From Rhodosorus marinus CCMP1338 (lineage: Eukaryota > Plantae > Rhodophyta), in contig JAMWBK010000002.1 in NCBI GenBank assembly GCA_029953675.1, positions 2,232,001-2,296,000 on the forward strand: 64,000 nt of DNA. The letters run 5' to 3'. Position 1 is the stretch's first letter, and each line of letters starts with the position of its first letter. A model generated the notes under the pieces. The model had not been told where the DNA came from and made no database searches. It worked only from the letters and a program-made list of their open reading frames with translations. This document shows positions 20,849 to 63,079 of this stretch, piece after piece. The translations under genes were made by a program, and so were the position numbers.

Positions 20849-22886
20849 TTAAATCCGATCGAGAGTAGGAATTCCGAGCATGTGGAGGCAAATACGTATA
20901 TCCTTGGCAGTGAGGTCGGCCAGAGTTATTCTAGATGAACGGATGTCTTCTGATCCAGCACCAACAATCGAGCAGGTCTCATAGAACTGATTGAACCGCT
21001 GGCTGAGCTCGAAAAGGTAGTCGCAGAGAATATGCGGCATAAGCATGTGATCTACATCCGCGATAACTTCTGGCAACCTGATCAACATTCTCCCAAGCGC
21101 TGCCTCTTGCGGTTCCTCGAGTTTTAGAGGTGAGACTGGTGGTTCCCCTTCAATCCCAAGTTTTCGGAAGATCGCCTATAGAAGGGTAGGAAAGGTAGAC
21201 CAAACAAAGAGTTCATATAGCGCTCTTTTCCACCGGCTTTTCGAGGACAGGAACTCACCTGAATCCTGGAGTAGGCATAAAGCATGTAGGGGGCGGTGTT
21301 TCCATCCAAAGCGAGCATTCTCTCAAATGAGAAGCGGTAGTCTGACGTCCTGTTGGTTCTCAGATCCGCGTACTTGACGGCGGAAAGGCCAATAACCTCC
21401 CCCACGTGCTTTATGTACTCTTCCGTCTCTTCTCTCTTTTCTTCACTCAGTCGGTCTCGGAATTTGCTTTCGGCTGCGGCAATGGAGTCAGTTAGCAAGT
21501 CCTTGAGCTTGATCGTATCTCCCGCTCGTGTTCGAAGCTTCTTCCCGTCCTCTCCGAGTACCAGACCGAATGGAACGTGCTCGAGTGATGCTGTCTCATA
21601 AGGGTACATCTCGCCTCGCCGCGCAACCTGAGGGAGGAGGAAAGGAAATCGAGCGTCAGATTGAGTTGAAAGGGTTCAGGTAGCTTGTGTTCCCTTGCTT
21701 ACCTGAAAGACTTGCTCAAAATGCACGCCTTGACCTGCATCAACTACGTAGAGCACCCTTTCGGCCTTCTCGTCCAGTGTTCTGTTCTGTATTGCCGCCA
21801 GATCTGTCGTCGCATACATATATCCTCCGTCTCTCTTCTGCACAAGCAGCGGCTGGGGGTTTCCATCCCGATTCTTAAATTTCTCTAAGTACACAACCGT
21901 AGCGCCGTCGTCCACGGCAATCAAATTCTTGTCTCGAAGCTCCTCAATCACTCCGGGTAGTTTCGCGTTGTAATAAGATTCACCACGCTCGATCAGGGTG
22001 ACGGACAGCATGTCATAGATCTTCTGGAACTCGATCCTGGACTGATCGCAGAGTAAATTCCAGGCCTTGAGCGATTCCTCATCACCACCTTGCAATTTCA
22101 CCACTTCTTTCCTTGCGTTCTCGTTGAACTCTTCATCCGTTTCGCACCGCTTACTCGCCTTCTTGTAGAACTCAACCAGGTCGCCGAGATCCCTCTGCCC
22201 TCCTTCTGTTAAGGCTTCAGGTGCCACTTCTTTGAGGTAGAGAATAAGCCGGCCGAACTGAGTACCCCAATCGCCCACATGGTTCAGTCTGAGCAGATCA
22301 TAGCCAATGAACTCGAGAGTCCTCGCGAGTGATTCTCCGATCATTGTAGAGCGAAGATGTCCCACGTGCATCTCCTTCGCAATGTTCGGTGATGAGAAAT
22401 CAATAACAATCCGTTTCGCTTCCTTTTTCGGCACGCCAAGTCTGTCTGGATCTGTACATTCCGGTCGTTGAGAAGTGGAAGAAACGTAGCGCTATGATCA
22501 GTTTCGTTTTCCTCTAGTCGAACCCAACGGACGGATTTAGGCGTTGATGAACCCTGCTTCTCCTTTTTACCTTTTGCCATCTGGAGCAGTCGATCCTCAA
22601 TGAACGAATTCTTGAGCTTGATGTTAAGAAACCCAGGCCCCGCAATACTTGGCGTTTCACAGAAGCTGCTCAAGTCGAGGGCATCCAACATCTTCCCGGC
22701 CACATCCCTCGGTTTCTGCTTCAGCTTCTTCGCAAGCCCCATCGCAGCGTTGCACTGATAGTCTCCAAACTCCGCCCTCGTAGCGTTCGTCACCATTGGC
22801 TTCGCCCCCTTCCCAACATCACCAAACGCCTCTCCCAGCGCTTTCACGACAGCCTTCTCAATCCTCGTCTTTATATCCCGACACAT
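20849..22886 (-). CDS. argS: Arginyl-tRNA synthetase, 4 coding exons, 586 aa
   Basis: Exons 22886-22571, 22451-21703, 21627-21259 and 21175-20849 sum to 587 codons. Motifs [58 protein letters not shown]. An extra upstream exon is possible. Confidence 0.95.
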
Positions 22887-27791: not shown

Positions 27792-29360
27792 ATGGTTGAA
27801 ACTTCACACCCGTATTTATCTCCAAAGCGGTCTGCGAGACGGTCGATTGATGAGGAATTGGATGTACCTCCGACTCCCGTTAAGTCGCCTGGTCGGAGGG
27901 TGCTAATGGACTGGTCGGATGACGAGGAAGATGATACTCTTACGCAGAACTTGATGACTGGGGGCCAGCTTCGGGGAAAAAAATTGCCCCCAAGGTTCCC
28001 AGCCACAATCCTGTCCCCGGGGCCGTCCACTCCACCTGCGGATAGATTTGAATCGGCGAGGGCCAAGAATCGGTTCCGAATGAGCTCCTCGCCGGAAGAG
28101 AATTTTGAGAGGAACAGTTTGCGGAGTCCGTCCGATGAACAAAGAAAGGTTTCCACTCCAATGGGGAGACTTCAGGGCAAGAGACGACTGGAAAGTAGCT
28201 CCAGAAATGAATCTATACGTGAAATTCTGAGAAGTCCTTTTCGGCTTACACCGCCACCACCTCCGAATTTCAATCCATTCTCGCCTGTGGGACGAAAACA
28301 TGCGAGGCAGGACAGTCTTTCGCCGAGAGCGGTGGACCCGACTCTGACCGCAGCTGCTACCCGAGCCTCAAACGCCCTCACGAGGTTTGCAAATTCGTCC
28401 CTGTGTGAGACGACCATTGGAAGTTCCTTCACGGATGATGACGGAGAGCTCTCATCCTTGCTGAAACCCTCTCGATACAAGGACGACTTTGAAGAGATTG
28501 CTGAAATTGGGAAAGGCAGCTTTGGGAGGGTGTTCAAGTGCCAAATGAGGCTGGACGGTTTGATGTATGCAGTGAAGTCGACAAAGAGGAAAATACGCGG
28601 AAGAGGAGAGTTGCAAGACGTACTGCGAGAAGTATACGCGCTTGCAGCGATGAGCACCAATCCCTACGTAGTCAGATACTATTCCGCGTGGATTGAGGAT
28701 GACTACCTCTACATTCAGACGGAACTGGTTGAAGGCGGATCCCTCTCTACAAGAGTCTTTTCGGAGAACCACAGTTTTGGTACTGAGGAAGTTAAGGATC
28801 TGCTTCGGCAGCTTGCATCGGGTCTTCAGAACTTCCATGAGCGACGCTTAGTCCATCTAGACTTGAAGCCAGAGAATCTCTACCTCACGAGAGAAGGTAT
28901 CTACAAGATTGGGGATCTTGGATTGACCACGCTCATTGATCACATCGAATCACAGGACGATCTTGTAGAGGGAGACGGACGGTATCTCGCGAGAGAGGTG
29001 ATTGAGGGGACTTCTAGGGACTTGAGGAAGGCCGATATGTTCTCACTAGGTCTGTCTGCATATGAGTTGTGCAGTGGAAAGCAATTGCAGTCCAATGGTG
29101 AAGAGTGGCGCGAAATTCGCCGTTGCAATTTGAAACCAATTGAGGGCTTGGACCCAAACTTGTTCACCCTTATCAAGAGACTAGTAGACCCTGACCCAGA
29201 CCGAAGGCCAACCGCGGCGGAGCTTATGCTGGACCCAATACTGTATAGACCGGGCGACGAGTTCCTCCTTAAGGAATTGGATCATGAGAGATGCCGAAGA
29301 CAAGCAGCTGAGGAAAGGGTGAGGACCCTAGAAGCTGAACTGAAGGCCTTGAAACCCTAG
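27792..29360 (+). CDS. WEE1: Wee1-like CDK-inhibitory kinase, intronless, 522 aa
   Basis: SP/TP-rich N-terminus; IGKGSFGRVFKC..RLDGLMYAVK; HLDLKPENLYL; YKIGDLG; EGDGRYLAREVI; KADMFSLG. Confidence 0.92.
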   Translation: MVETSHPYLSPKRSARRSIDEELDVPPTPVKSPGRRVLMDWSDDEEDDTLTQNLMTGGQLRGKKLPPRFPATILSPGPSTPPADRFESARAKNRFRMSSSPEENFERNSLRSPSDEQRKVSTPMGRLQGKRRLESSSRNESIREILRSPFRLTPPPPPNFNPFSPVGRKHARQDSLSPRAVDPTLTAAATRASNALTRFANSSLCETTIGSSFTDDDGELSSLLKPSRYKDDFEEIAEIGKGSFGRVFKCQMRLDGLMYAVKSTKRKIRGRGELQDVLREVYALAAMSTNPYVVRYYSAWIEDDYLYIQTELVEGGSLSTRVFSENHSFGTEEVKDLLRQLASGLQNFHERRLVHLDLKPENLYLTREGIYKIGDLGLTTLIDHIESQDDLVEGDGRYLAREVIEGTSRDLRKADMFSLGLSAYELCSGKQLQSNGEEWREIRRCNLKPIEGLDPNLFTLIKRLVDPDPDRRPTAAELMLDPILYRPGDEFLLKELDHERCRRQAAEERVRTLEAELKALKP

Positions 29361-37035: not shown

Positions 37036-39590
37036 CTACACAGGAACTTCACTATCTTCAGGGGCCACGCCTGTCTCGTCAGCGGGAGTATCCTCTTGCG
37101 CTTGTTTTTCTTCTACTTTGCGCGTCATCCTCATTTCGAAGTCGTCCCCATCGAGCTCGTCCTCAGAGGGAATGTATTCCTCACAAATATCTTGGAACGT
37201 CCCCCCGCTTCGAATGATGGCGATTGCACGGATGAACTCATCGATCAGCAAGTCAAGAGAATACTGAGTCACGGCTTTACCCAAATCGTGAGACAAGTCA
37301 AAAGGATCCTCAATTGAGAAACGATGGTCGCTCCTCCAGTTCCTTGTGCGCCCTTCGTTCTTCGTCTTTTCCGAGGTTTCAGCTGTGCTCTCCTCCTCGG
37401 CGACCCTAGGACATGGAACAAGAGCGACAGAATGCAATCGTTCAGTCATCGATTCGGCGCCCACGACGAAGTCCTCAATTCGACCGAGGTTTTCATACTC
37501 CTTGTCCTCGGGCTTCGCGGGTACGGGAACAAAGACTCCGTTCTCTTCAACATAGTCCCAGCTCTTCCCCTCGCGGGACAGAAAACCACCCGTTCTCGGG
37601 CAGAATACCATAGTCTCGTAGTTATGAATAAATGCGTGGTACCAAAAAAATGATAGCAAGAGCTCTCCGACGGATTCCTTGTTCTCGTTAGGATCAGGGT
37701 CTTTAAGCCATTTGAATTCCCTGTCGAAGTAAACGTTCCAGCCTTCTTCTATCCTCCTTTGAACATTACTAGGATCACGAACAGGCCTGCTCTGGTACGA
37801 TTGCTGCAAGCAAGGCAGCACGGGCTTCGGACGCCGGACTAGGAAGTGGATCATCAACAAAGCGTAAGCATAGGAACTGAGTGTACCCCGATATGCCTCG
37901 TTTATCCTCCGGCACTTTGCCCAATATTTCAATGCGAGGACTAGGGGCTTCACTCGCCAGTCAAGACTCACGTACGTAGCAATGAGCTCAGTGTTGTGAC
38001 GGGCGAGCTCGTTGTTGACACACATGTCAACTTTGTATCCAGATACAGGATCAAAGAACTGCACAATTGGAACTCTTGCCCTTCCACGAACCTGAGCAAT
38101 ATTAAGGAGAGCAGGCGAAGAACGAACCGTTTCAGACATTGTCCTGTTGCAAATTCCCTATTCCGTAAAAGCTCGAGGTGTACCTCAATGTCTTGCATTC
38201 TCGCCCTTCTCAGAAGCCTTGACGCCTTCCACACAAGGTTCCTAGTGGTCTGAATGTTTCCATCCTTGTTGGACCTTGCATCCTCAGGAGGAACGATCGC
38301 ACAAACATCGACGTCCCCATTCTTTAGTTCTAGTCCAGTCCCCGAAGACCCAAACAAGATTACCTTGGAGTGTGGCCATTCTTTTCTGCATACTTTCTGC
38401 AGATGTCGCACGAGACTAGCTCGTCGATTCGTATCATTCTCCGGCGGGACTATTTTCTCGTAGACTTCCCTGATGCCCTTCTCCAGCAAGCCGATCGCCG
38501 ATGGGTTTATCCCCCCCGTAATAATCTCCTTCGCGATGTCTGGGTTCCTCACGTATTTACACTGCTGGGCTCTGGCAGTAACTCCCTCGTTTCGATTCGT
38601 GAGAAACGCCTCCTCCTTCTTCGTTTTCGCTGTCAAGGAGTCTGCGTTTTCCGCACCATCGCTGTTAGCTGCCTTGTCAGAGGTAACTGCGGCATCAGTC
38701 GCTTCTACTGGTTCCCCAGCAGGTTCCTCGCCTGCGGGTTTATCTTGTTGAATCTGGTCAAATGCCTGGAGCCTTCCTTTCTCGCTTACGTCTCCAGCAA
38801 GTTCCGGGCTCGGATCGGAGGCTGGGATCGCTCTCGAATGCATTCCTTTCACCTCATGACTTACCCACAATCCATCCGCTGGCGTCAGAGGGATAGCCGA
38901 AGCTGGAAGGCTAAGGTCCGCGGCCGCTTCTTCGAGTTCAAGATTGTTCAGCGACACAAGAGCAGGAGGGCCCTTTGCAGCCGCCTCGGAGGACATGTCT
39001 GCAGGTACGAAAGCAGTACCGATTTCTCCAATGAAAGGATTTTCGGGGGGGACTGTCCACAACCCTGGCCCGGACGGGTGCTGCTCCGTACCCTGCCCAA
39101 TGACACTCGTGCTATTGATATTTGCTACAGGCCCGGGTGGTACCTCATTGTGGGAGGAAGGAAGTGAGATATGGGTTTTTGCGAAGTCCTGACTAAGCCA
39201 CTGATCGCTTGCTTGAAGGGGAGGGTCCTCTGTCATGATTTGCCTAGCAGGCTCCGTGACAACGGTTGAGTCTTGCGGTTCGCTTTTCGACTTTCCATGC
39301 CGGTTCGGGCCCTTCTTTCCACGTCCTCGCCGTGCTGCGGGCTCTGGTGCGGTCCCGAGGAGAAGCTGCTGCTGCCAGTTCATCCCAGCCTGATCCTCCT
39401 TGTTCTGCTGTCCTTGAGGTCCAGGCCCTTGGAGCGCTACTTCCTCATTAGCTGTACCAGTTTCACCACTTGATCCCTGCTTTCTCCTTGCTGGCCTCCT
39501 CGCTGGCCTTCGACGTCTTCTCCTTCCGTCCACTGAACCCCCCGCTGCAACCCCACCATCACCTCGTCCGTAGTCCTCTTCTCCTGCCAT
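37036..39590 (-). CDS. Terminal uridylyltransferase / Cid1-family non-canonical poly(A) polymerase, 2 exons, 820 aa
   Basis: Intron 38183-38092. Catalytic LFGSSGTGLELKNGDVDVC, ARVPIV, KVDMCVNN, GTLSSYAYALLMIHFL; PAP-associated SIEDPFDLSHDLG with His. Confidence 0.9.
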
Positions 39591-50058: not shown

Positions 50059-50982
50059 TCACTGCAGGTCTTTGCAGAACAGGAGTTGAGTGCCCGGTAC
50101 GGAGATTACTTGAATTGCCATTCCAGATGAGAGGATTCTCACTGAGTACGCATCTTCGTCTCTCCAGAGGAGACTGTAGCCAAGCTTCTCCTCGTAAAGC
50201 TTCTTCGCGGGTCCGTTTGCGTCCTCAACGATGAGCCAAATATCCTTGAACAATCCTTCATTCCACGTACGGACCTCCTCCTCACAAGCCTCACATAACC
50301 TTTTTCCAAGGCCGAGACCGCGGGCATTTGGCGATACAGCCAGGTTTGACAAAACGGGATGCAGGGAGTACTTTCCTTCCTCTTCCTGCGCATCGAAAAC
50401 TATTGCAGCAACTTCGTGAAGCGGGGACTTCCTCAGCGAATTCCTGACTGGCGCAGACATTGCACCCAGGGTGGAAGAGAATAGTCTCTCCCCTACCTCC
50501 CTTGGCAGCACTTCGTAGGCGCCATTTAATTCCTTGACAACCGCAACTTCGATCCCTACACATCCTAAGATTCCCTGCTCCCCTCTCGCAATGAAGAAGC
50601 TCGTCGACAGCCTTCTCTTCCCAGTTAGTCTTCCATATCTCGAGGACAAATCTTCCTCCTGCTTCGACACAAGTTGCTTATGTGCATCCCCTTTCAGCGA
50701 GGATCCGCCTAGCCCCTCCTTCACATTGTCCGTTGTCGACGCGACCCAGAACGCGTCCACAAAGAAGCTCGCACAGTCCTGCAGCGCACCGTAATCATCA
50801 GTCCTATCAATCACGTACGAATCCGTCACCGATGCCTGTGCCAATACCGGTCTACATCTCCCCCACGATCCAGGACTCCTAAAAACACGAGGCCTAACCC
50901 GACTCACCCGAAACTTCAGCCCGTACCGATTACCCAACCCTAGCCCATAAGCCACAAATCCAATCTTCATCCCCCCGTCCAT
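50059..50982 (-). CDS. Plastid-targeted GNAT-family acetyltransferase, intronless
   Basis: Transit-like MKIGFVAYG..., VLSNLAVSPNARGLGLGKRL (acetyl-CoA binding) and NGPAKKLYE..LGY. Start is ATG 50982 or 50970. Confidence 0.85.
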   Translation of the reverse strand: MDGGMKIGFVAYGLGLGNRYGLKFRVSRVRPRVFRSPGSWGRCRPVLAQASVTDSYVIDRTDDYGALQDCASFFVDAFWVASTTDNVKEGLGGSSLKGDAHKQLVSKQEEDLSSRYGRLTGKRRLSTSFFIARGEQGILGCVGIEVAVVKELNGAYEVLPREVGERLFSSTLGAMSAPVRNSLRKSPLHEVAAIVFDAQEEEGKYSLHPVLSNLAVSPNARGLGLGKRLCEACEEEVRTWNEGLFKDIWLIVEDANGPAKKLYEEKLGYSLLWRDEDAYSVRILSSGMAIQVISVPGTQLLFCKDLQ

Positions 50983-51859
50983 TCCCCCCCTCCCCCCTCC
51001 CACCCCACCACCCCCTCAACACACTCTCAAAACAAAAAAAACAAAACACAGAAACTTTGCACAAAAAGCAAGCCCGAAAAAAAAACAACTTAGTCTCAAT
51101 GTAAAAAATAAATTACTCTCAACTACAATAAACTATTAAGACGCTTATCCAAAAAAACAATGGCCTCAATACTAATCCATAACACACCCTCCCCATCCCC
51201 ACCACCCAACCTCCCCCAAGTCCTCTACACCCTCCTCGTCCACAAAGAAATGAAAACGGCCCAAGTCAGAGATGGTAATCTGCTTGGCATCCGATCTTAC
51301 CATTTTTAACTTCCCTGTTCATCAATAGAATCGATTTAGAAGCTCATCTATTTTTATTTTTAAAACCCTATTTTGAAAAATGGTTTAGGATTCGTAGGCT
51401 CATCTATTTTTATTTTTAAGACCCTACTATGAAAAACGGTTTAGATTGTAATTTTATACGAATTAAAAAATGGAATTGATTTAATTTTAATGTTGGTTTC
51501 ATAGGACATTGCGAAAAGTATTGCAAAAAGAGGATGGGATCCTTTTTGAATGGCTTTTGGGATGGTGGAGACTTCCAATGCGAGTTCGGAGAGAGTGTGT
51601 GTTTGCGGATGGTGTTTTCCTAGAAGGACCCCCCTTTTCGAACTCCTCCCAACAAAGCTTAACCGGCGTTGGAAGTTTGATTTGTTTTATATGACATCAA
51701 CTTGAAACTTGCTAATGGTTTCGAGGATGGTTTCTCTCAGTGGATTTGCATCTCCCACTAACGGACACGAGTCCCGGTCATCGACACACTCCGCTCCTTC
51801 TTCCGCCACGCGAACTTTATGCACAACAGGAAGCAAACCAAGGGGATAGCGGGTTGCGG

Positions 51860-52150
51860 TCTTTCACGGAGGCCAGATCCGGATAAACTTGCTGCGGACG
51901 AGACGACCTAGATACCAAGTCTCTGGTACTCCAAATGCGGATTTCGATCTTTCTGTATATAGCTGGTTGTCCCTGTAGGCGAGCCAGGTTCGGGGAATAG
52001 ATGATGATATCATCGAAAAAGATTTGAGATGAAAACGCCCAATTCCTCAAAGAAAATGTGATTCAGTAAAATCGAGAGAAGACCACAGAGTGGAAGCGCT
52101 AACGCTTTGAGGGAAACTTAACCCGTTCCAACTCAAATCTATCTAAAGAC
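51860..52150 (-). mobile_element. Decayed Ty3/gypsy reverse transcriptase fragment
   Basis: Frameshifted pieces in order: LLNHIFFEELGVF (52069-52031), FFDDIIIYS (52020-51994, YxDD-like), SKSAFGVPETWYLGRLV (about 51950-51900). Confidence 0.75.
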
Positions 52151-52583
52151 GACTGGTCCCTCATTCGATCCGCCACTAAAATCTCCAATAGGTCGAGGCG
52201 TTCACCTTTTAAGGATGAATGGGAGTCGACAGTATCGATTTCAATACTGCACTAAAGCCACGATTGGAAGCAAAGAAAATAACTTGTTTCCAACTCAAAA
52301 GCATCTCATCCCGTTCCTTCTTCATTCTGATACGTTCGGGGCGTGCACCTCCCTCCTGGCGCTCAACTTGAGATATGATAAAAGGTCTCTCGATCTCCTG
52401 CCAATGGGTTAGAAGAGGGAGGGACTGGACTTGGCTTTGGCTTGTTATTTACGTTTGGTTTGAAAACATAAGAAACTTGGATACTGCAATTTAAGTAAAC
52501 AAGGACTAGAAGCGATTTTCTAGTCCTTGTGACAGTGCTTCTTCTTTTTTTTTTGAAAGAGGAGTTGTTGGGAATCTAGAAAG

Positions 52584-54283
52584 ATGGAGGAAGAACTACC
52601 GGAGGTGCAAGAACCTCGAGCCTCGAGTTTCTTGCCGGGGTCCATTGGACTTCCTACAGAGTTTAAGCTTACTGGATACTCTCGCCTGAAAGGGTGAGGG
52701 TGCAAGATTCCGCAGGTAGCCGGGCCGAAGAGTTGTCTTTGCCTCTTGACTTCGCGTTGGATTTCAAGCTTTGTTCTCCCAGGAATTAATCGTTGGTTTC
52801 TCCTTCTTTCGTTCACTGTTTTTTAAATACCCACTCCGCGGCTCGATGACAGGCGGATTTGACTCGCCTGTTGGATCGTTCTGGGATCTCTCAGAACAGA
52901 AAGATGATGGATACATCTGTGATTGAAATCAGAGGCCTACCCAACTATCAACTCGTCTCTACAACGGACTTCTTTTTCCCACTCGTTGATGATCCTTTCC
53001 TCATGGGAAGAATCGCCTGCGCTAATGTTCTCTCGGACATGTACTCGGAGGGCGTCACTGAGGTCGACAATCTCCTCATGGTCCTCGCCGCGTCTCTCGA
53101 TATGCCTCCAAGCTGTCGAGATCTAGTCACCTGGAAAATGATCGAGGGCTTCAGGAGCCTTGCCGAGGAGGCTGGTTCATCGGTTACTGGTGGTCAGTCT
53201 ATCTACAACCCATGGCCTATTATCGGTGGAACAGCTCTGAGCGTAGTTCCAAAGGAGGTGAGAATTTAGGCTGTGAAATCACACTTGAGAGTATGGCCAC
53301 GGACCGTACTCACTCCGTGAATGTGGTGTGGAGCCTATGCTATGGCTCTGGAGCGAAGGTACCCCCCCGTGTATGCACTAAACTCTGAACTAATTCTGTT
53401 CGGGTTTGCTTTTTATTTGTTCGTAGAGGGTTTTAATGCCTACTGGAGCAATTGAAGGGGACACTCTTGTCCTCACCAAACCGATTGGAACTCAAGTTGC
53501 AGTGAATACCTTTCAGTGGATCAACATAGAGGAGAGATGGTCAAGGATTTCGGACGTTATCAGTCGGGAACAGTTAGAGGTGAGTCTTGGAACAGCTCTT
53601 CTTCTCCCTCAGCCAACCCCCCCCACCCGCAACCCTCTTCCTGAAGCCACGTTGCGTTGCCGCTTCTGCTTGTGTTTTCTCGACAGCGCGCTTTCGATAT
53701 CTCCGCGATGAGCATGGAGAGACTAAATCGGAAAGCCGCGGAACTAATGTGGAAACATGGAGCTCATGCGGCCACGGACATAACTGGATTCGGAATTCTC
53801 GGACATGCTGAAGCGCTAGTTCGTAATCAAAGGTACATCCTCTACATTAGCAATCCTCTCATTTAGATTCGAAGCGGGAGCTAACCGCGGGTTTCTGCCT
53901 GCTTGTCCCTCCGCACCAGCGAGTCTGTCTCGTTCGTTATCCACACATTGCCGGTGATACGGTGCATGGCTAGCGTCGACGCCACGCTGCAAAACCTGTT
54001 CAGTCTAGTGAAGGGGCGCTCCGCTGAGACCAGCGGTGGACTATTGATCTGTCTTCCGAAGGAGAATGTGGCGGCGTTCTGCTCCGAGATTTACGAGGCC
54101 GAGGGATGGCCAGCGTTTGTTGTTGGGTAAGCAGGTTGACCAGCACTGGGAAACGCCGTACTGGGAACGGGGAGTATTGACCTTTTCGCGCTTTTTTCGT
54201 TGCTTTGGTGCTTTGGCAGGACGGTGATAAGCGGTGATAGGTCGGCATCTATTGCCGCTGATGTGGAAATCAAAGAAGTTTAA
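52584..54283 (+). CDS. SEPHS2: Selenophosphate synthetase 2, a selenoprotein (Sec38 encoded by TGA 52695-52697), 6 exons, 368 aa
   Basis: Exons 52584-52715, 52853-53257, 53427-53579, 53687-53832, 53920-54126 and 54220-54283 sum to 369 codons. [64 protein letters not shown]. Confidence 0.95.
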
Positions 54284-54291
54284 CACTGAGG

Positions 54292-54390
54292 GTGAGTTTG
54301 TCCTCAATAACGGTTGGTCCTCATGAAGTCCGTTGTTGATGTTCGGCTCAAGCTGCTAGTGTGGACGTCCTGTTTGTTGTTTAACTGTAG
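54292..54390 (+). other. Probable 99-nt intron in the SPS2 3' UTR
   Basis: Donor gtgagt 8 nt after the stop; T-rich tract with ttaactgtag acceptor; length matches other introns in the window. Confidence 0.65.
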
Positions 54391-54412
54391 GTTGCTTCTG
54401 GAACGTGCAGAG

Positions 54413-54481
54413 GTGCATACTATGACGCGTGGCTTCGCAAACCCGGGAGGGGGAAGCCAGAGCTGATCGCTTCTTGTGTAC
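54413..54481 (+). promoter_or_regulatory. Eukaryotic SECIS element, type II
   Basis: Helix I GUGCAU/GUGUAC; core AUGAC...UGAU; helix II GC..GGCUUC/GAAGCC..GC; apical AAA followed by CCC/GGG mini-stem; located downstream of a UGA-containing SPS2. Confidence 0.88.
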
Positions 54482-54846
54482 GGGGCAGGAGCAGTCCTTG
54501 TCCGCCGACCCTTGGGGGGTTCCTCTTTTCCTTTGAGTAGGGTACGTGATCGTTTTTTGTTTTCTTTGTTAGTTGTAACGAACGATGCATGCTCCACAAA
54601 GTCTAGACAAGTTTGTTCTAGGAGAGGTTAAAACCACTGCCGCAAAAGTCGGCCAGGTCTGAATATGAAAAAATCAATAACATAACATACTATTCACAGT
54701 TCCAATAAGCAAGCATTGGAAGACTATTCACAATTCACGGTAGCAAGCTGGTAGGCGTCGGTTTCCTGGGTCAAAGAACAACCTTGACATAGCAGTCGCT
54801 CCCCATCGCGTCAACGATCTTTTCAAGTTTTCGATAAGCGCTGGGG

Positions 54847-57000
54847 CTACAGCGCGGAGGCTTGGCTGTTTTTGTACCTTGGGTCGGTGAAGGCAAAGTA
54901 TTTTCTTGACATGTCGCCGGTTTCCGTCTGTACATCAGCAACTGAGATCCCGTCCACTCCAATTGTCCCCTCCATTGCGGAGACACTGTATCCAAACGAT
55001 TTTAGAGAAGTGCAGACTTCCTCCCAGTAGCTAAACGGTGCGCCGCTGGACCTTCGGAATATTGCCGTCGTCGCACAATCTTCCGGGTGAATGCCCTCCA
55101 TATAGACCGTTGAATTTGAAAGCTCAAACGTCATCCTCGGAGCAGCAATGGCCGTTGCCAGGTCGTCACCATATTCTACTGCGTTCAAGATCGTTTCAAT
55201 CATCGTTTGGGTCGAAGCTGCACCTCCAGCTGATCCGAAAGCAAACTGAACGCGCTTGAAATCCTCGATAACGACAGGGGCCATCCCACTGATCGGGCGA
55301 TTTTTGGGTTTCAATTCGGCGTTGGAGTCAATCGCAAGGAACAACTCGTTGTTCAGTAGGATTCCCGTCAAATTTGAATACAAACCATCGGCAAACTCTG
55401 AGCCAAGCGTCGCCGTGAAAGACACGGCACTGCCTCCGCTGTCGGTAGCAGCGATATGAGTCCCAGCGTAGTTTCGAGCGATCTCTGGTAGAGCCGCCGC
55501 TCTCAAGTTCGAGGGTAAGGTCTCCACTTCCTTTCTCGAAGCAATCTTGAGATTCAAGCCAGCCCGATTAGCCTGAGCATTGTCCTTGTCCAGCATCTTC
55601 TTAATGTTCTCGCTCGACTTATTAGCGTCCGATGTGGGGTCGAACATCATCTCCCAATCTTCAAAGGCAAGCTTCGACGCCTCAATAACGAGATGATAAG
55701 CTAGACCGTTTCTCCCTCTTCTTCGGAGTCGGTAACCTTCCAGTATCGAGAGCGCTTTCGCGAGAATGGCCCCGGATGAGGGCGGTGGTGAGGTCCAGAT
55801 CTTATAGCCATCGATATAGAACGATATAGGGTCGTACTTTCTGGCCTCGTAAGTTTTGAAATCCGATTCGTTCATCTTTCCCCCCGCGGTGTTGATCTCT
55901 TCGCTCAGCTGTTTCGATAAGTTATCGTAAAGTGACTTACTTCCATGCTTGGCAATATCTTTCAATGTCGATGCCAGCTCCGGCGTCGAAGCATTTTCTC
56001 CGGCCTTGAGGACCACGAGCTTGTTCAAGACGATATCGTCGACCTCAGGAATCAACTCATCATTCTCAAAAGGCCTCGTAAAGTACTGCTTGAGCACGTC
56101 ATGCTCGAGAATGTAGTCTGACTTTGTCCGTAACACTTCCGCAAAATGCGGGCTAACCTCCCACTCCTCCGCCAGTTTGGAGACCTCTAGGACGAGAGAT
56201 TTCCACGCTAGTTTCCCATGGGCCTTGTGGAATGTCTCAAGAGCCCGGAGAAACCCTGGTACTCCGACATTTGCTCCTCGAGCGTCCTCTTTCCCAACAC
56301 TAGATTTATCAAAGCCATCGGGAACGTTGACCAGGCCGTCGTAGACCACGGTCTCCTTTTTACCCGCATCGTAGTACAGGATCAACGCGCTTCCGCCTAG
56401 TCCACTTGTATGAGGATGCATCACACCCTGACAAAGAGCTGCTACAACGACCGCGTCAGCTACGCTTCCTCCGCTACTGGTGGCTACTTTGGTGCCCATC
56501 TCAGAACAATGAGAATTATCCGCAGCGACGGCCGCCTGATACCCGCTCTGAGCGGAGACTTCAAGACCCGGGTCGGACGAAGCTCCGGGCGCAACAAGCT
56601 GGGTAGGCGCTATAAGGTTTAAAAGGCTCGGCAGTGCCAGTACGAGCGCCGCAATAATCAGCAGAGAAACCACTCTGAGGAGGTGAGACCAAACCGTATG
56701 GGGATCTGACTCTCCACTCCAGTTCTCAGGTAGATTTCTGTTCCAGAATCGGCGAAATCTGTAATACGCCCTCCCGAGAAGTCCAGGCCTGGTGAGTCTC
56801 TGTGACTGCTGATCCCCGTCAACAGAGTCGTCCGCGGAATACGCGCTAAAGTTCATGCTATCCCTGTCTGTACTTCCCATCCGGACTAAATCCGGCTGGA
56901 TCTCGTCCACCTCCGGATCATCGTTCACAACGACCTCGTACTTCCCCATCAAAATCTTCCCGTTTTCGTCCGTCTCCAAAGCTACCCGAAATACTTCAAC
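54847..57000 (-). CDS. Gamma-glutamyltranspeptidase-like type II membrane protein; catalytic Thr appears replaced
   Basis: TM helix followed by AAVAADN..CSEMG, GVMHPHTSGLGGS, VGVPGFL..L...HGKL.W, TSPPPSSG, IEASKLAF, GILLNNE, PKNRPISGMAP, DPR. Start uncertain: the T-rich ORF start 57093-57001 looks like an intron, and ATG 56949 is a candidate. Confidence 0.85.
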   Translation of the reverse strand, partial: VEVFRVALETDENGKILMGKYEVVVNDDPEVDEIQPDLVRMGSTDRDSMNFSAYSADDSVDGDQQSQRLTRPGLLGRAYYRFRRFWNRNLPENWSGESDPHTVWSHLLRVVSLLIIAALVLALPSLLNLIAPTQLVAPGASSDPGLEVSAQSGYQAAVAADNSHCSEMGTKVATSSGGSVADAVVVAALCQGVMHPHTSGLGGSALILYYDAGKKETVVYDGLVNVPDGFDKSSVGKEDARGANVGVPGFLRALETFHKAHGKLAWKSLVLEVSKLAEEWEVSPHFAEVLRTKSDYILEHDVLKQYFTRPFENDELIPEVDDIVLNKLVVLKAGENASTPELASTLKDIAKHGSKSLYDNLSKQLSEEINTAGGKMNESDFKTYEARKYDPISFYIDGYKIWTSPPPSSGAILAKALSILEGYRLRRRGRNGLAYHLVIEASKLAFEDWEMMFDPTSDANKSSENIKKMLDKDNAQANRAGLNLKIASRKEVETLPSNLRAAALPEIARNYAGTHIAATDSGGSAVSFTATLGSEFADGLYSNLTGILLNNELFLAIDSNAELKPKNRPISGMAPVVIEDFKRVQFAFGSAGGAASTQTMIETILNAVEYGDDLATAIAAPRMTFELSNSTVYMEGIHPEDCATTAIFRRSSGAPFSYWEEVCTSLKSFGYSVSAMEGTIGVDGISVADVQTETGDMSRKYFAFTDPRYKNSQASAL

Positions 57001-58270
57001 CTGTTGCGGACTCGCAACAAACCAGAAAAAAATTGTCACCGCGACGAAAACAAAACAAAAACAAAGAAAGAACCAGAAACAAAAACCTCTCACGTTCGAG
57101 GAAGAATCAAATCCATTCTACAACTGTTCGCGCCTCTGCGAGCTCAGACAATGACCTCGCGCAGGGAGAAAGCACACCTCTCCAACAGCGGGTAAACAAA
57201 ACCAACTCGGAAAAGAGCGCAAGCTTTCCAACATCCGATCTCCAACGCAAAATAGCCCTGTCTCCCACGCTCTCAACAAAAATTGTCAACGGTATTAACA
57301 ACGGTCCGTGGGGACAGCGATGGTTGCGACTTTGCGGCTTCAACCAAAGCAAACAGCACCAAATGAATGTACTTCAACAAGGTCTTATAGATTCCAGGCT
57401 TTGCTCCCCAAGAAGAAACTTCGATCTCTACGCTTACACTTTGCCTGGGCTTCCGCATTAGACTGAAGGAGAGGCTGAAGTGGATCAGACACTTTCTAGT
57501 GAACCGTCGTTGAGAAGGTTGTAACCTAAAACAAAGGATCTGAGCTGATACTGCTTCCTTCTCAGACTGCATTTTGCTGTAGTGCAGAAGGCAACTCCGG
57601 GAAGTGCCTTGATGGACCGAGTGCGATGGATCGCGATGGATCGCAATGAATCGCTTGCTTGCGCTCTCACTGGTTGGTGACATTCCTGCTCAACCATGGA
57701 TTGGCTTTCTGGTGCAACCTTCGCAACGTGCTTATGCGTGAATCGCTGTCTTGTTGGTTCCTTGAGAGTGCTTGTAGACAACGGCTCTCAGTCGAGGCCT
57801 AGATTGATGCATTCCGACCTCTCTAGTCTGATCAACCTCTGATAATGTTCGCCTACCTGAAGAAGATGGACTCTTTTTTCACATGCTTGAAAACGGGCGG
57901 TACACGAGTTCTCCCATGGTATTGATGGACGCATGTTTGTGTTGCTTAGAAGCACCGATTAGCTTTATCGTATGCAAGTGCCTGGAACGAACCGAGAGCG
58001 TTGAGCTGATCTACCCCGCGCGGGCATGTCCGCTCTGAAGCCTTGAACGGCGCCTCGTCCGTCTTGAGGATGGCATATATGTGCCTCCTGCCTCGTTCAC
58101 GGGTGGATGAATCCTCGTGAGCTGGGGACAACTCTTGAGTTGTGTACTGTTGACGGTTTCGCCACCGTCTGTTGTTGACGCACCAGCTTCATCTGCAGAC
58201 GTATGCCTTCGACACTCTTCAAGTACGAAAAACTGATGTTTTAATCCACTTTTCGAAATCGTGCTCAATT

Positions 58271-61200
58271 CTACACTTGCGGTCTAGCCTGGACGATGTA
58301 ATACTGTCCTTCGCGAAAACATCCCTCAATATCCTGGGGGAACCCTCCCATCGTGTCCTCGACAGCCTTACCGATTGCTCCGACTTTGCCCATCAGCTCC
58401 TCTCTAAACTTATCATCGTTCATGATCTTGTCCTTGGAATAATCAACGTCGATCTTCTTCGGGCTCTGCAACGAGATGGAGTCATGTAGCCCTGCGCCGG
58501 CAAATCCTTCCAGGTCCTCAGCGTTTGAGTCAGATCGGAAGATGAACGCCCCGCCCTTGAGGGCATATGACTTTGAAGGATAGGCCTTGATCATCGGAGG
58601 GTTCCCAGGATTCTTCTTCGATGTTACAAAACTCAGGGCCTGTCCGGGAGAGTTGGAGACCAATGTCTCACCTAACCCAACTACTACCTCGCCATATATT
58701 TCGTCCTCGTTGGAGTTGACTGGGTTCGTCGTATGGATAACAAAAGCGTAGTCTGCATCAACAACTTTCTGGCACAGAACAGCCATATCGACGTCTTCTA
58801 CCTCCAGCATGAGCTTGCGTCTTGCGAGGTGAGCTCTCTCGTTCCATATCGATGCCCATACACCTTTAACTGCTTCCCAAGCAGCAGGCATGGACTCGTC
58901 GATTTCTTCACATCCTAGCTCATCGAGGATTCCTCGAAGCGAATCCGCAAGTCCCCCAGGGGTGCTCAGCCTCATGACACACTGTCTCAACTGCGGGCAA
59001 AGAGAAACGTCATTGGCCTTTGCCTTCGCCAGCAAACGACGGAGCTCAACGTACTCCTTGTAGACCTTGACGTTCTCCGGCGCTCGAAAAGCTTTCTTCA
59101 TAGCTCCGTTGGGGATGGTAATGGATTTCGGCACTTGGATCCAATCCGGAAGTCCAAGGGCAAGCAGCTTCTGGAGATTAAGCGATTTTGAACCTACAAC
59201 CTCCGTGTCGTACTCGGAAGGTCGAATCGCCCATGCTGCCGATGCAAGTCGCTCCGGGAGGACGGAGGCCTTTCGGGCAACACCGGATACTGAGAGCAGC
59301 GACTGCGAGGAAGTTTTCCTCAGCAGGGCTGCTTCGCCTGGGGTGTCAGTGCTCTCTGTCAAGCCCGAAGGCGGTGCGTGTAGCCCAGAAGGAGGCGTAA
59401 TGAGTCCCTTCGACTTGACGCGTTTCATTCCCATCTTGAGATCGTTCATGGACATCGACTGAGACTTCTTCAGCGACTCCTGCAGCACTTCAATTTTGAA
59501 CGTTTCGCCCTCCAGTTTCGCTTTCACAAGGCACGCTTCATTGGTTTTCAGCTCAGTCAACTCGTCAGCGTCCAGACAAGCGATAAGACCGTGGTGTTCG
59601 TTCCTTGCCCTCACGGCAACATGGGAAAGTACGTCTACGGTGCTTCCGATGATAACGTACCTCGTCCCGTCCGGTACATCTTCATCACCGTCGCAAAAGT
59701 CAGCGATAATCACCGCTCCTTTCTCTATCGTCTGGCCCATCGATTCCCTTAGATGCTCATAGCAATACACCCTCCCAGTCGTCTCCTTGTCATACGGTGA
59801 AATCACTTGATAAGGTCCCATTCTTGCGATTCGCCTCACTCCTGGGGATGCCTTGCGGATGAGCGTCGATAGGGAGTACGCAGGCCCACCACGGACTGCC
59901 TCTTCAACAAATATCTTTACTACGTGGCGGTCAGCTTGAAACGCTCTGCCAAGAGCTTCCGCTGGGTTTCCAAAACACGTCTTGTAGCGGTCCACAACAG
60001 TCGTGAGGCAAGTTCTCGCGTGATTTAGAGCAGCAGCGGCTCTCAAACCAACATCTTCCGATTCTCCATAGAAGCCAATGCGTTCGATGGCTTGCCGCAT
60101 CTCGTTCTCCACGTTGTGCAGGACGGCTGCCGAAGGTAGATCCCCTTCGGACATCGCGAGACCAGTGGCAGCAGCCCTGATGGCGGAGAGATGAGCCCAG
60201 AGCGACCCATCTAGATCACCACCCTCGACGACTCTGCGGGTGTCCGACTCCAGGGCTAGATCCAAAAAGATGGCGTCCCTTCGCTCATCGTCCGGAATGT
60301 ACGGATTCTCTAGGTGTTTATGCAGATCTCTCCGCGCGTGCGCAGACGCGCGGATCATGTCTATCAGCGGCCTGTTCTCGTTTCGTATGTGCATGTAGTG
60401 GTTCACCTTGTCCTTTGCTTCCTGACTTAAGCAGTGGTGGACCTTTCCCAGGATAGTGTTCAGATCAGTCCCGAGGTGAACCGCTCTGAGAATTGCACCA
60501 TATTGGTTGAGCTCATGAATCATTGTGCCCTTCAAATGCCCGGGGAAGTCCGGCTCAGAAGTTATCGGCTGTTCATACCCAGCCATTCTCTCCCTGGTCA
60601 CACTATTTTCACCTAGCACTCTCCAGTACTCATGGATGTTCCCGTTTGAGTGCCAGAAAGCCAGGAGTGCATCGCATATGACCACATCGTCCGGGTTCGT
60701 ATTGTTGTGCAGCTTCTGATGCCACTGCTCCATCATGCTGCCGTGGCCCCACCCTCGATTGTGCCTAAGGATCACCAGAATGTCATCCCTAATTCTCTGA
60801 CCCAGGTCGCCCGATCCACCGCGTCCAACACAGGACATTACTAGACGAATAATCCACCGGAGTTTTGGGAGTTCCTTATACTTTGCCGCCATTGTCGTGA
60901 CGAAGTTCATTTGAGCTGAGGATAATTCTCTTGGTTTGGTGTTGAAGTTCCGTTGCCAGTCCAACACCCGCAACTGCGAATAACGCATCCAGACGTACAT
61001 TAACGCCCACGCGGCCTCGTCCGCCCCAATCACTTCCCTCGCAAAGTAGCTTCCGGTATTGTAGCGGTGCATCAGTGTCCATGAGCCATACTCCATTTCC
61101 TTTTCGACAATATCTTCAGCCAGCCTCTTCGCAGCTTCAGAAATTTTCTTGTCAAGGCCGGGGAGCGCCGCAGTCTGCTTCAAGCTGATGAACATGTCTC

Positions 61201-62194
61201 CCCCTCCGGGACGATTCAGCCATTTAGAATCCACCGGCATGTACAAGACGAACATTAATCCGTTGCAGTCATTAGGTAAACTCTCTAGCTTGAGTGCCCT
61301 GACGTAATCTGTCGCATCACTGAATTCCGTTTGAACCGCCCTCTTGTCTCCTTTTGGTGTAGTCTGTGGAGGCCAGCACTCCTTCGGGGGTTCCGCCCAG
61401 CTGCCCTTCCTGCCCACTTTGATACCCCAGTGGAGGATCAGGGGATCGCCTGCGATCTTAATATTTGTGACCAGGAGGACGTTTGCAGGTGGCGGGTCGT
61501 CAGACTCGGGCGCATTTGCGGGTCCGTAAGAGCAGTAGACGATGTCACCAAAGTCTCCGAAGGAATAGGTTTTCCGTTCCTTCACGCTAAACCTCTTGAG
61601 TTCTTTGTCCATGTACTCTTCGCAGAGCTTCTTCCTCTTCTCTCGCTCTTCCTTTTCCTTCTGAAGCTTCTCCTCCTTTATCCTTCGCTCTTCTGCTAGC
61701 TTCTTCTCACGAGCTTCCTTTTCCTGTTTGGCTTTCTGCTCCGCCTCGAACCGCTCCTTCGCGCGTCTCTTCTTCTCGGCTTCGCTAAAAGCCGATTGAA
61801 GATCGAAATAGAAGTTCCCACCTCTTTCGGCCTTGAACCACTGCTCGCGGGTTCCGGTGCTCGCCTCGATGTAGATCAGGAACACAATGCCGCTTGGGGC
61901 CTTCTTCTCGTCCACGTCGATAAAAACAGTACCGTCCTCGAACGGTGTACGGACGGATTCCTTTCCTTCTCTGTACGGAGTACCTTCCGGAAGCATTTCT
62001 GGGATCGGCTTTATGTATGTGGTTTGATCACCTCTAGTCATCCCCCAATGCATGACGTAATGCTCCGCCTCATGCTGCACCGGATCCGACACAATGCTCA
62101 AAGTCACGTGAATCATCCCATCCTCGTTTCTCAGTGTTTGGCAAAACGAGAGCGGCCCAGAATGAACGTAAGATTCGTCGTCCTCAGCACCCAT
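58271..62194 (-). CDS. GWD: Alpha-glucan, water dikinase (GWD/R1), intronless, about 1307 aa
   Basis: Two CBM45-like modules (VMHWG, LILHWG), WTLMHRYN, EQWHQKLHNNTNPDDVVIC, phospho-His DVLSHVAVRARN, AIKGVWAS-like/NER motif, FRSDSNAEDLEGFAGAGL, QDIEG...IVQARPQV. Confidence 0.96.
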   Translation of the reverse strand: MGAEDDESYVHSGPLSFCQTLRNEDGMIHVTLSIVSDPVQHEAEHYVMHWGMTRGDQTTYIKPIPEMLPEGTPYREGKESVRTPFEDGTVFIDVDEKKAPSGIVFLIYIEASTGTREQWFKAERGGNFYFDLQSAFSEAEKKRRAKERFEAEQKAKQEKEAREKKLAEERRIKEEKLQKEKEEREKRKKLCEEYMDKELKRFSVKERKTYSFGDFGDIVYCSYGPANAPESDDPPPANVLLVTNIKIAGDPLILHWGIKVGRKGSWAEPPKECWPPQTTPKGDKRAVQTEFSDATDYVRALKLESLPNDCNGLMFVLYMPVDSKWLNRPGGGDMFISLKQTAALPGLDKKISEAAKRLAEDIVEKEMEYGSWTLMHRYNTGSYFAREVIGADEAAWALMYVWMRYSQLRVLDWQRNFNTKPRELSSAQMNFVTTMAAKYKELPKLRWIIRLVMSCVGRGGSGDLGQRIRDDILVILRHNRGWGHGSMMEQWHQKLHNNTNPDDVVICDALLAFWHSNGNIHEYWRVLGENSVTRERMAGYEQPITSEPDFPGHLKGTMIHELNQYGAILRAVHLGTDLNTILGKVHHCLSQEAKDKVNHYMHIRNENRPLIDMIRASAHARRDLHKHLENPYIPDDERRDAIFLDLALESDTRRVVEGGDLDGSLWAHLSAIRAAATGLAMSEGDLPSAAVLHNVENEMRQAIERIGFYGESEDVGLRAAAALNHARTCLTTVVDRYKTCFGNPAEALGRAFQADRHVVKIFVEEAVRGGPAYSLSTLIRKASPGVRRIARMGPYQVISPYDKETTGRVYCYEHLRESMGQTIEKGAVIIADFCDGDEDVPDGTRYVIIGSTVDVLSHVAVRARNEHHGLIACLDADELTELKTNEACLVKAKLEGETFKIEVLQESLKKSQSMSMNDLKMGMKRVKSKGLITPPSGLHAPPSGLTESTDTPGEAALLRKTSSQSLLSVSGVARKASVLPERLASAAWAIRPSEYDTEVVGSKSLNLQKLLALGLPDWIQVPKSITIPNGAMKKAFRAPENVKVYKEYVELRRLLAKAKANDVSLCPQLRQCVMRLSTPGGLADSLRGILDELGCEEIDESMPAAWEAVKGVWASIWNERAHLARRKLMLEVEDVDMAVLCQKVVDADYAFVIHTTNPVNSNEDEIYGEVVVGLGETLVSNSPGQALSFVTSKKNPGNPPMIKAYPSKSYALKGGAFIFRSDSNAEDLEGFAGAGLHDSISLQSPKKIDVDYSKDKIMNDDKFREELMGKVGAIGKAVEDTMGGFPQDIEGCFREGQYYIVQARPQV

Positions 62195-63079
62195 CCTGAA
62201 CCCTCTCCCCCTTCTCGCCCTCCTACCCCCCAACCGCAAAATCTTCCACCCAACAAACCCCCCTACGGCCCACCCCACCACCTCTAAAGCCAGCGCGTTG
62301 TTTCACCCTTCTACTACTCCGATCTCGGCTCTCCTCTTCTGTAGTACAGACCCCTTTAATACCCCTTAACAACTCTACCACAACTCTTCCAAGGCCCCGA
62401 AATCCCGAACTACACCCACCCCCACCCCCACATTCGTTCTCACCTTCTCCCAGACGTCTCATCATCAATAGAAGAAAAAAAAAAACACAAAGACTACTTC
62501 TCGTCAACTTGTTTTCCTCCATTTCCAGGGTATCATTGGCCATCATCATGGCCCCGGCATGGCCCCACAAAAATCTTCATATTTTCAATTAGAGCAGAAC
62601 AAACTACGGATTTTCATAATCCAGCTCACATTCCTTTATGAAAAGGAGGGGAAAGATATCTAAGCCCAACCCATAAACATATAATTTCGTAATATTATAG
62701 GCTTGATTAGTATTTTGGTTGTGTGCTTTTCTATTGGGAACTTATTTTTGAGTACGTATCTGATTTGAGAAGTAGTTTTTCTTTGGCTTCGTCTATCGAA
62801 TACGTTCTGAATATATCTAAATTTATCTCTATTTATTACTTATACGGTATTTAAAAATGGATTATATGGTAGAGGCGGTTTTGCGGGGAGCTTGATAACG
62901 GACTTGAAAAAATAAATGTTTCTTAATTAATGTAAAATGAGTTGTTTTTTTTTCCTCAGATCTTTGTATGGTGTTTTGATTGATTTTCTTCGAATTAGGA
63001 TTGATTTGGCTGCCTCCGTGCTCATCGGTGGCAAGTGCTCCGATGAGGATGTCTTGCTACAGTAGGCACGAGGTGAAGT

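Follow-up and report, generated by a model that had tools for sequence, protein, structure and literature searches.

A probable selenocysteine-containing selenophosphate synthetase 2 in the red alga Rhodosorus marinus

Selenophosphate synthetases and selenocysteine use in red algae

Selenophosphate is the selenium donor for Sec-tRNA synthesis, so a selenophosphate synthetase which itself carries selenocysteine (Sec) depends on its own product. This self-dependence is a known feature of the Sec-type enzyme SPS2, which is a textbook selenoprotein; SPS2 or SEPHS2, as the name of the Sec-containing selenophosphate synthetase 2, is reportedly the nomenclature of Mariotti et al. 2015. Here we studied a gene which lies in a 64-kb stretch of Rhodosorus marinus CCMP1338 DNA (the window) and compared it with the closest described systems. 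It resembles the eukaryotic SPS2/SEPHS2 in the AIRS plus AIRS_C fold, in a predicted Sec within an LKG-U-GCK loop, in a predicted SECIS element in the 3'UTR and in a stop codon other than UGA, and its product would likewise be both the selenium donor enzyme of the Sec pathway and a selenoprotein. The two differ solely in lineage, the alga being a member of the Stylonematophyceae, and in gene structure, with six coding exons and a probable 3'UTR intron upstream of the SECIS in R. marinus. As far as the sequence can tell, no functional difference is visible. Human SEPHS1 (SPS1; PDB 3fd5, 9hjt) can be aligned with the R. marinus protein over residues 14-362 and has all of the ATP/metal-binding motifs in common with it, but SEPHS1 carries Thr where the algal protein has the predicted Sec, and the algal protein is without the 10-15 residue insertion which follows the catalytic loop of the human one. 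SEPHS1 is regarded as not making selenophosphate. The closest full-length annotated proteins among the matches listed are the Cys-type SPS of oomycetes (Phytophthora, P0005) and Leishmania (PDB 5l16), which are unfused and about 51% identical to the R. marinus protein. Unlike the latter, they have Cys (LKGCGCK / LKGCSCK) and not Sec in the loop, so that neither a SECIS nor recoding is needed.

Red algal SPS were described by Liang et al. 2019 (PMC6627142), who placed the proteins of three rhodophytes, of the same unfused AIRS plus AIRS_C type as the one studied here, in their clade III, which groups with archaeal and other eukaryotic SPS. The same study found the Sec machinery to be complete in some red algae outside Bangiophyceae and Florideophyceae and fully lost in Porphyra, Pyropia and Chondrus; Rhodosorus was absent from the six rhodophyte genomes studied. 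Jiang et al. 2020 found red algal selenoproteomes to be very small, and a 2026 review describes Sec retention in rhodophytes as largely confined to early-branching extremophiles (PMC13578239). The class Stylonematophyceae is outside the cited red algal Sec surveys, and in the literature searched we found no mention of Rhodosorus with selenocysteine or selenoproteins. The initial annotation of the locus had implied that Sec use in such an organism would be a rarity, which was overstated given that red algal Sec machinery was published in 2019 (PMC6627142). Since Sec use in such red algae has been published, the gene is of a known kind, and what is new is a member from this class and the correction of its annotation.

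The R. marinus gene and its in-frame UGA

In the translation of the window, the reading frame which starts with ATG at 52584 on the plus strand has a TGA at 52695-52697 as its codon 38. Exon 1 (52584-52715, plus strand) comprises 44 codons and has a 3' boundary of CAG followed by gtagcc, and the complete spliced SPS2/SelD model consists of six exons of 1107 nt in total, which comprise 368 codons and the final TAA, codon 38 being the sole in-frame stop before it. The introns, all of them GT-AG, are 137, 169, 107, 87 and 93 nt long. The initial annotation had given the position of the TGA in exon 1 and its codon number exactly, as the translation confirms, and its joining of six exons in frame to 368 amino acids was equally exact according to both the splice model and a transcript (L002, described below) collinear with it over 1107 nt. 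The features of the locus are:

52584-52715, plus strand: exon 1, codons 1-44, with the ATG and the catalytic loop LKG-U-GCK, from translation and splice model; the ATG is common to the GenBank model P0121 and the L002 transcript
52695-52697, plus strand: putative Sec codon TGA, codon 38, aligned with Cys17 of E. coli SelD; kept in L002, L001, L008, L003/L004, L005 and L006
52605-52706, plus strand: GenBank pseudo-intron, really coding, 102 nt or 34 codons with a chance GT..AG; in the L002 mRNA, its peptide conserved across taxa
52853-53257, plus strand: exon 2, 135 codons, AIRS N-terminal domain with Asp64, Asp83 and Asp106
53427-53579, plus strand: exon 3, 51 codons
53687-53832, plus strand: exon 4, 146 nt, phase 2 end, ATDITGFG motif inside
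53920-54126, plus strand: exon 5, 207 nt
54220-54283, plus strand: coding part of exon 6, stop TAA at 54281-54283
54292-54390, plus strand: probable 3'UTR intron, 99 nt, gtgagt...ag, deduced from L002
54404-54491, plus strand: predicted type 2 SECIS, with core ATGAC at 54422-54426, AAA at 54439-54441 and core TGAT at 54464-54467

The encoded protein has the two Pfam domains PF00586 (AIRS, residues 65-176) and PF02769 (AIRS_C, residues 189-357), both above the gathering score. It also matched the NCBIfam equivalog TIGR00476 selD with 229.8 bits against a cut-off of 125, and its scores with two bacterial PRK SelD models were under their stricter cut-offs, as is expected for a eukaryotic sequence. 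Among solved structures the best match was human SEPHS1 (E = 5e-106), followed by the Leishmania selenophosphate synthetase (E = 8e-88) and then by E. coli and Aquifex SelD; the values for SEPHS1 and TIGR00476 rule out a chance ORF. No Pyr_redox_2 or NifS-like domain is fused to the protein, and this unfused architecture assigns it to the archaeal/eukaryotic type, which is clade III of Liang et al. (PMC6627142). The residue at codon 38 corresponds to Cys in the SPS of Leishmania and the oomycete Phytophthora and to Thr in human SEPHS1, and in every functional relative aligned this column contains U or C. In a HMMER alignment to 3u0o, codon 38 fell on Cys17 and Lys41 on Lys20 of E. coli SelD, two residues which, following the SelD literature, we take to be catalytic. 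The initial annotation had put the UGA at the catalytic Sec position of SPS2 (LKGUGCK) and proposed an alignment to SPS2/SelD orthologues as a check; in these alignments codon 38 is indeed the catalytic column. Four Asp residues are shared without change with human SEPHS1, Leishmania and E. coli SelD, namely Asp64 (MDTS), Asp83 (TTDFF), Asp106 (LSDMY) and the one within ATDITGFG (residues 259-266); their role in the ATP/metal site is taken from the SelD literature.

Is the UGA also present in the mature mRNA? L002 is a 4552-nt spliced transcript contig from another R. marinus strain (JGI 3300017118), 93% identical in protein, and it contains a 1107-nt frame which is collinear with the spliced model without a gap and has TGA at codon 38. 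This collinearity confirms all five junctions, a check which had also been suggested at the outset, and it places the 52605-52706 segment in the mature mRNA. In codons 1-60 there are eight base differences between the model and L002, which change five codons synonymously and three non-synonymously and never affect a second position, and in codons 61-368 the differences are at third positions in 47 of 67 cases; judged from these substitutions, the pattern upstream of Met62 is one of coding constraint. L001 (JGI 3300016877), a transcript contig free of introns from a taxon with 61% identity in SPS2, reads MLPPLTSRASAFDPTSLGLPKEFRLTSFSELKG-TGA-GCKIPQADLL... in frame with its called ORF, and L008, a transcript whose product falls in the same 90% cluster as the Compsopogon caeruleus protein, reads ...FTVLKG-TGA-GCKIPQ. 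The in-frame UGA is retained in the mature mRNA of the sister strain and likewise in these two. Three independent environmental contigs (L003/L004, L005 and L006), which were picked solely for an ORF size of about 305-314 aa, each show TGA at LKG*GCK shortly upstream of the called ORF, and the same in-frame TGA was found in all of the SPS2 relatives tested. At the protein level residues 13-61 are conserved, with the frame continuing through the UGA, in taxa which are 52-67% identical. Two further R. marinus isoforms from MMETSP, P0128, which runs from exon 3 into intron 3, and P0124, which ends at the exon 5/intron 5 boundary (...FVVG), are by their sequences intron-retaining transcripts of the SPS2 gene in the transcriptome assembly.

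The public gene models depart from this structure. The R. marinus CCMP1338 genome was annotated with BRAKER 2.1.5 (Lee et al. 2023, PMC10250338), and the GenBank protein KAJ8907890.1 (P0121, NDN08_007993; 334 aa) equals our model minus residues 8-41 (VQEP...LKGUGCK) and is otherwise identical to it, which means that the deposited intron is at 52605-52706 and takes out both the UGA and the catalytic loop. The best database match among those listed is from Rhodosorus marinus, and its 90% cluster includes KAJ8907890.1; identity with this protein outside the skipped segment agrees with the earlier assignment of the DNA to a probable red alga. The MMETSP/UniProt entries P0001 and P0122 (307 aa) start at Met62, which is the first Met downstream of the UGA. 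Both kinds of public model are without the catalytic loop, and we regard the GenBank and transcriptome models as artefacts which arose because the UGA was taken as a stop. The initial annotation had expected automated annotation to truncate the gene or call it a pseudogene. The gene has indeed been mishandled, and truncation at Met62 is what is seen in the transcriptome ORFs, but GenBank errs by a false intron. In all of the SPS homologues of about 305-314 aa which we examined (four independent sequences plus L001 and L002), TGA at LKG*GCK lies just ahead of the called start, and for this reason many of the matches which cover about 83% of the query are probably truncated entries of Sec-type SPS2. 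With the catalytic loop missing from KAJ8907890.1 and the first 61 residues from the UniProt/MMETSP entries, surveys based on these records would score the enzyme as inactive or miss the selenoprotein. As a separate observation, the Galdieria phlegrea model P0038 (383 aa) is a full-length SPS match in which the catalytic loop, SxLKG[U/C]GCKxPQ in relatives, is replaced by SRLKEQCFTGYSTT…; from its sequence, P0038 may likewise be a model distorted so as to avoid an in-frame UGA.

A predicted SECIS element and the decoding of UGA-38

A 3'UTR SECIS had not been reported in the initial annotation and was the key piece that was missing. The candidate in the SPS2 3'UTR has the sequence ATGAC (54422-54426)-GCGTGGCTTCGC-AAA-CCCGGGAGGGG-GAAGCCAGAGC-TGAT (54464-54467). 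When the ends of its upper part were forced to pair, it folded at -15.3 kcal/mol with a helix II of about 9-10 bp, the AAA unpaired and a 3-bp CCC/GGG mini-stem, and the flanks formed helix I at -11 to -14 kcal/mol. An earlier scanner with ungapped helices was too strict and missed the candidate; in its place we used an ad hoc scan which combined a motif (ATGA, AA 9-13 nt past the core, NGAN) with constrained folding, and whose energy thresholds were those of the weakest of three examples, set after these examples had been seen. On both strands of the 64 kb (128 kb in all) the sole match was 54422-54467, compared with 0.067 matches per window in 30 dinucleotide shuffles, and it was still the one match in the window with looser thresholds and GTGA allowed. 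The scan made errors on L006, where it missed the AT-rich element and gave one match inside the coding region. No Rfam family matched the whole window at gathering score, and the SECIS families had no match at E <= 10 in 52000-55200 either. By folding energy alone the element was no better than shuffles (z = 0.04), so that it is motif, architecture and conservation which support the call. In L002 there are two substitutions in the core span, one in the loop of the mini-stem and the other at an N of NGAN; L001 shares ATGACGC...GCTGATC and differs in helix II and the mini-stem, and the elements of L008 (GTGA type) and L006 share the architecture but not the helix sequences, which are unrelated. 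RNAalifold recovered helix II from a MAFFT alignment of three SECIS; its pair counts are unusable as covariation evidence because MAFFT misaligned the distant sequence. The motif, the fold and the relatives point to a canonical type-2 SECIS in the SPS2 3'UTR, predicted and conserved. Positions 54292-54390 are missing from the L002 transcript, in which both flanks align, and are probably a 3'UTR intron, or else a strain indel. With this intron removed, the SECIS core would be about 40 nt past the stop codon in the mRNA.

On this evidence the R. marinus gene is very probably a genuine Sec-decoded SPS2/SelD, nuclear, single, unfused and of the eukaryotic type. Could GenBank nevertheless be right that 52605-52706 is a true intron and that the product is a SelD-like protein of 334 aa without the catalytic loop? 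The segment has GT/AG bounds and a length which is a multiple of three, and the model comes from an RNA-seq-trained BRAKER run. However, the segment is present in L002, where all five real introns are spliced, and the intronless mRNAs of L001 and L008 have the matching segment with its TGA; it also codes for the N-terminal motif that is most conserved in the family, and splicing it out deletes the residues aligned with E. coli Cys17 and Lys20. We consider such an intron extremely improbable. Another possibility is that UGA-38 is a true stop, that codons 1-37 are a short upstream ORF and that the enzyme begins at Met62. Met62-Met63 are present and the 307-aa ORF is the one found in the MMETSP and UniProt entries, yet its product would be without the Sec/Cys-Gly-Cys-Lys loop which is aligned with the catalytic residues of E. 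coli SelD, and the conserved SECIS would be without a role. The conservation of residues 13-61 as protein across the UGA argues in the same direction, and a start at Met62 appears very unlikely.

Is it possible that UGA-38 is decoded, but as an ordinary amino acid? Sec at residue 38 is deduced, and readthrough by a near-cognate or suppressor tRNA has been proposed for SECIS-less insect SPS1-UGA genes. The R. marinus gene, in contrast, has a predicted canonical SECIS in its 3'UTR, conserved in relatives, and the homologous residue in UGA-free relatives is Cys, the usual exchange partner of Sec; moreover, red algae of the related SCRP group (Stylonematophyceae, Compsopogonophyceae, Rhodellophyceae, Porphyridiophyceae) have been reported with Sec machinery. 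We give readthrough of this kind as little probability as the start at Met62. An in-frame stop inside an otherwise intact gene might also be the mark of a pseudogene, or the TGA might be an assembly error. Against both stands the identical TGA in transcripts assembled independently from another strain and from other taxa, and elsewhere the gene is free of defects, its differences from L002 being mostly at third positions in codons 61-368, as given above; to this explanation we attach almost no weight at all. Reassignment of UGA was considered as well: in the window, TGA terminates three ORFs with Pfam support, which is weakly informative because these ends may be exon ends.

For the Sec-decoded SPS2 which we favour, we hypothesize that SBP2 bound to the SECIS would recruit eEFSec with Sec-tRNA(Sec), as in established eukaryotic Sec decoding, and that UGA-38 would be decoded as selenocysteine and not as a stop, giving the enzyme of 368 aa. 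By analogy with the SelD family, Sec38 and Lys41 would be situated in a flexible glycine-rich N-terminal loop and, with the conserved Asp residues holding ATP and Mg, would make selenophosphate from selenide and ATP. This selenophosphate would then be supplied to SepSecS as the selenium donor for Sec-tRNA synthesis. ARAGORN found no tRNA in the 64-kb window, hence no tRNA-Sec there, and none of the Sec machinery genes PSTK, SepSecS, eEFSec and SBP2 is within it. We infer that R. marinus probably has an active Sec pathway. The Sec-type SPS2 and its conserved SECIS are good, if indirect, evidence for Sec use in a mesophilic marine red alga of the Stylonematophyceae, and the transcript from the Compsopogon cluster (L008) is equal evidence for the Compsopogonophyceae. 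Both are additions to what is known of the patchy retention and loss of Sec among red algae, and they leave the picture of Sec decoding and SPS2 function unchanged.

Neighbouring genes and other features of the window

A gamma-glutamyltranspeptidase gene (54847-57093, minus strand; PF01019, E = 4e-87) lies tail to tail with SPS2 (52584-54283, plus strand), with 563 nt between them. The same convergent pair is found on L002 (590-1513 and 1987-4089) and on L001 (300-1226 and 1493-3118), and the merging of both genes in one transcript contig suggests overlapping or abutting 3' ends. Could the SPS2/gamma-glutamyltranspeptidase pair be a conserved functional unit, and do mesophilic marine red algae outside Bangiophyceae and Florideophyceae generally keep a Sec-dependent SPS2? 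We regard this proposal as unlikely. If it were true, the breakdown of glutathione conjugates (e.g. selenodiglutathione) would be coupled, via shared or overlapping 3' ends, to the supply of selenide for selenophosphate, and a general retention of Sec-SPS2 in such mesophiles would contradict the view which largely confines it to early-branching extremophiles (PMC13578239).

On the other side of the gene, about 55 nt upstream of the SPS2 start, there is a perfect 12-bp inverted repeat, CAAGGACTAGAA / TTCTAGTCCTTG, with a 6-nt loop (52500-52529), and a T-rich run follows at 52540-52554. The 3' arm of the repeat has two mismatches in the L002 strain. This 5' hairpin and the T-run account for weak chance matches to Rfam at E <= 10 in 52000-55200.

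Other genes in the window, none of which belongs to the Sec pathway, are:

58271-62281, minus strand: alpha-glucan water dikinase, one ORF of 1336 aa
45411-47648, minus strand: ubiquitin carboxyl-terminal hydrolase
27792-29360, plus strand: protein kinase
50059-51003, minus strand: GNAT acetyltransferase
21676-22434, minus strand: arginyl-tRNA synthetase exon

Lastly, a Cid1/TUTase-like nucleotidyltransferase at 37036-39590 on the minus strand is split over two overlapping ORFs, with the palm in 37968-39590 and the rest of the palm plus PAP_assoc in 37036-38139. The two ORFs are presumably one gene with an intron or a frame change.
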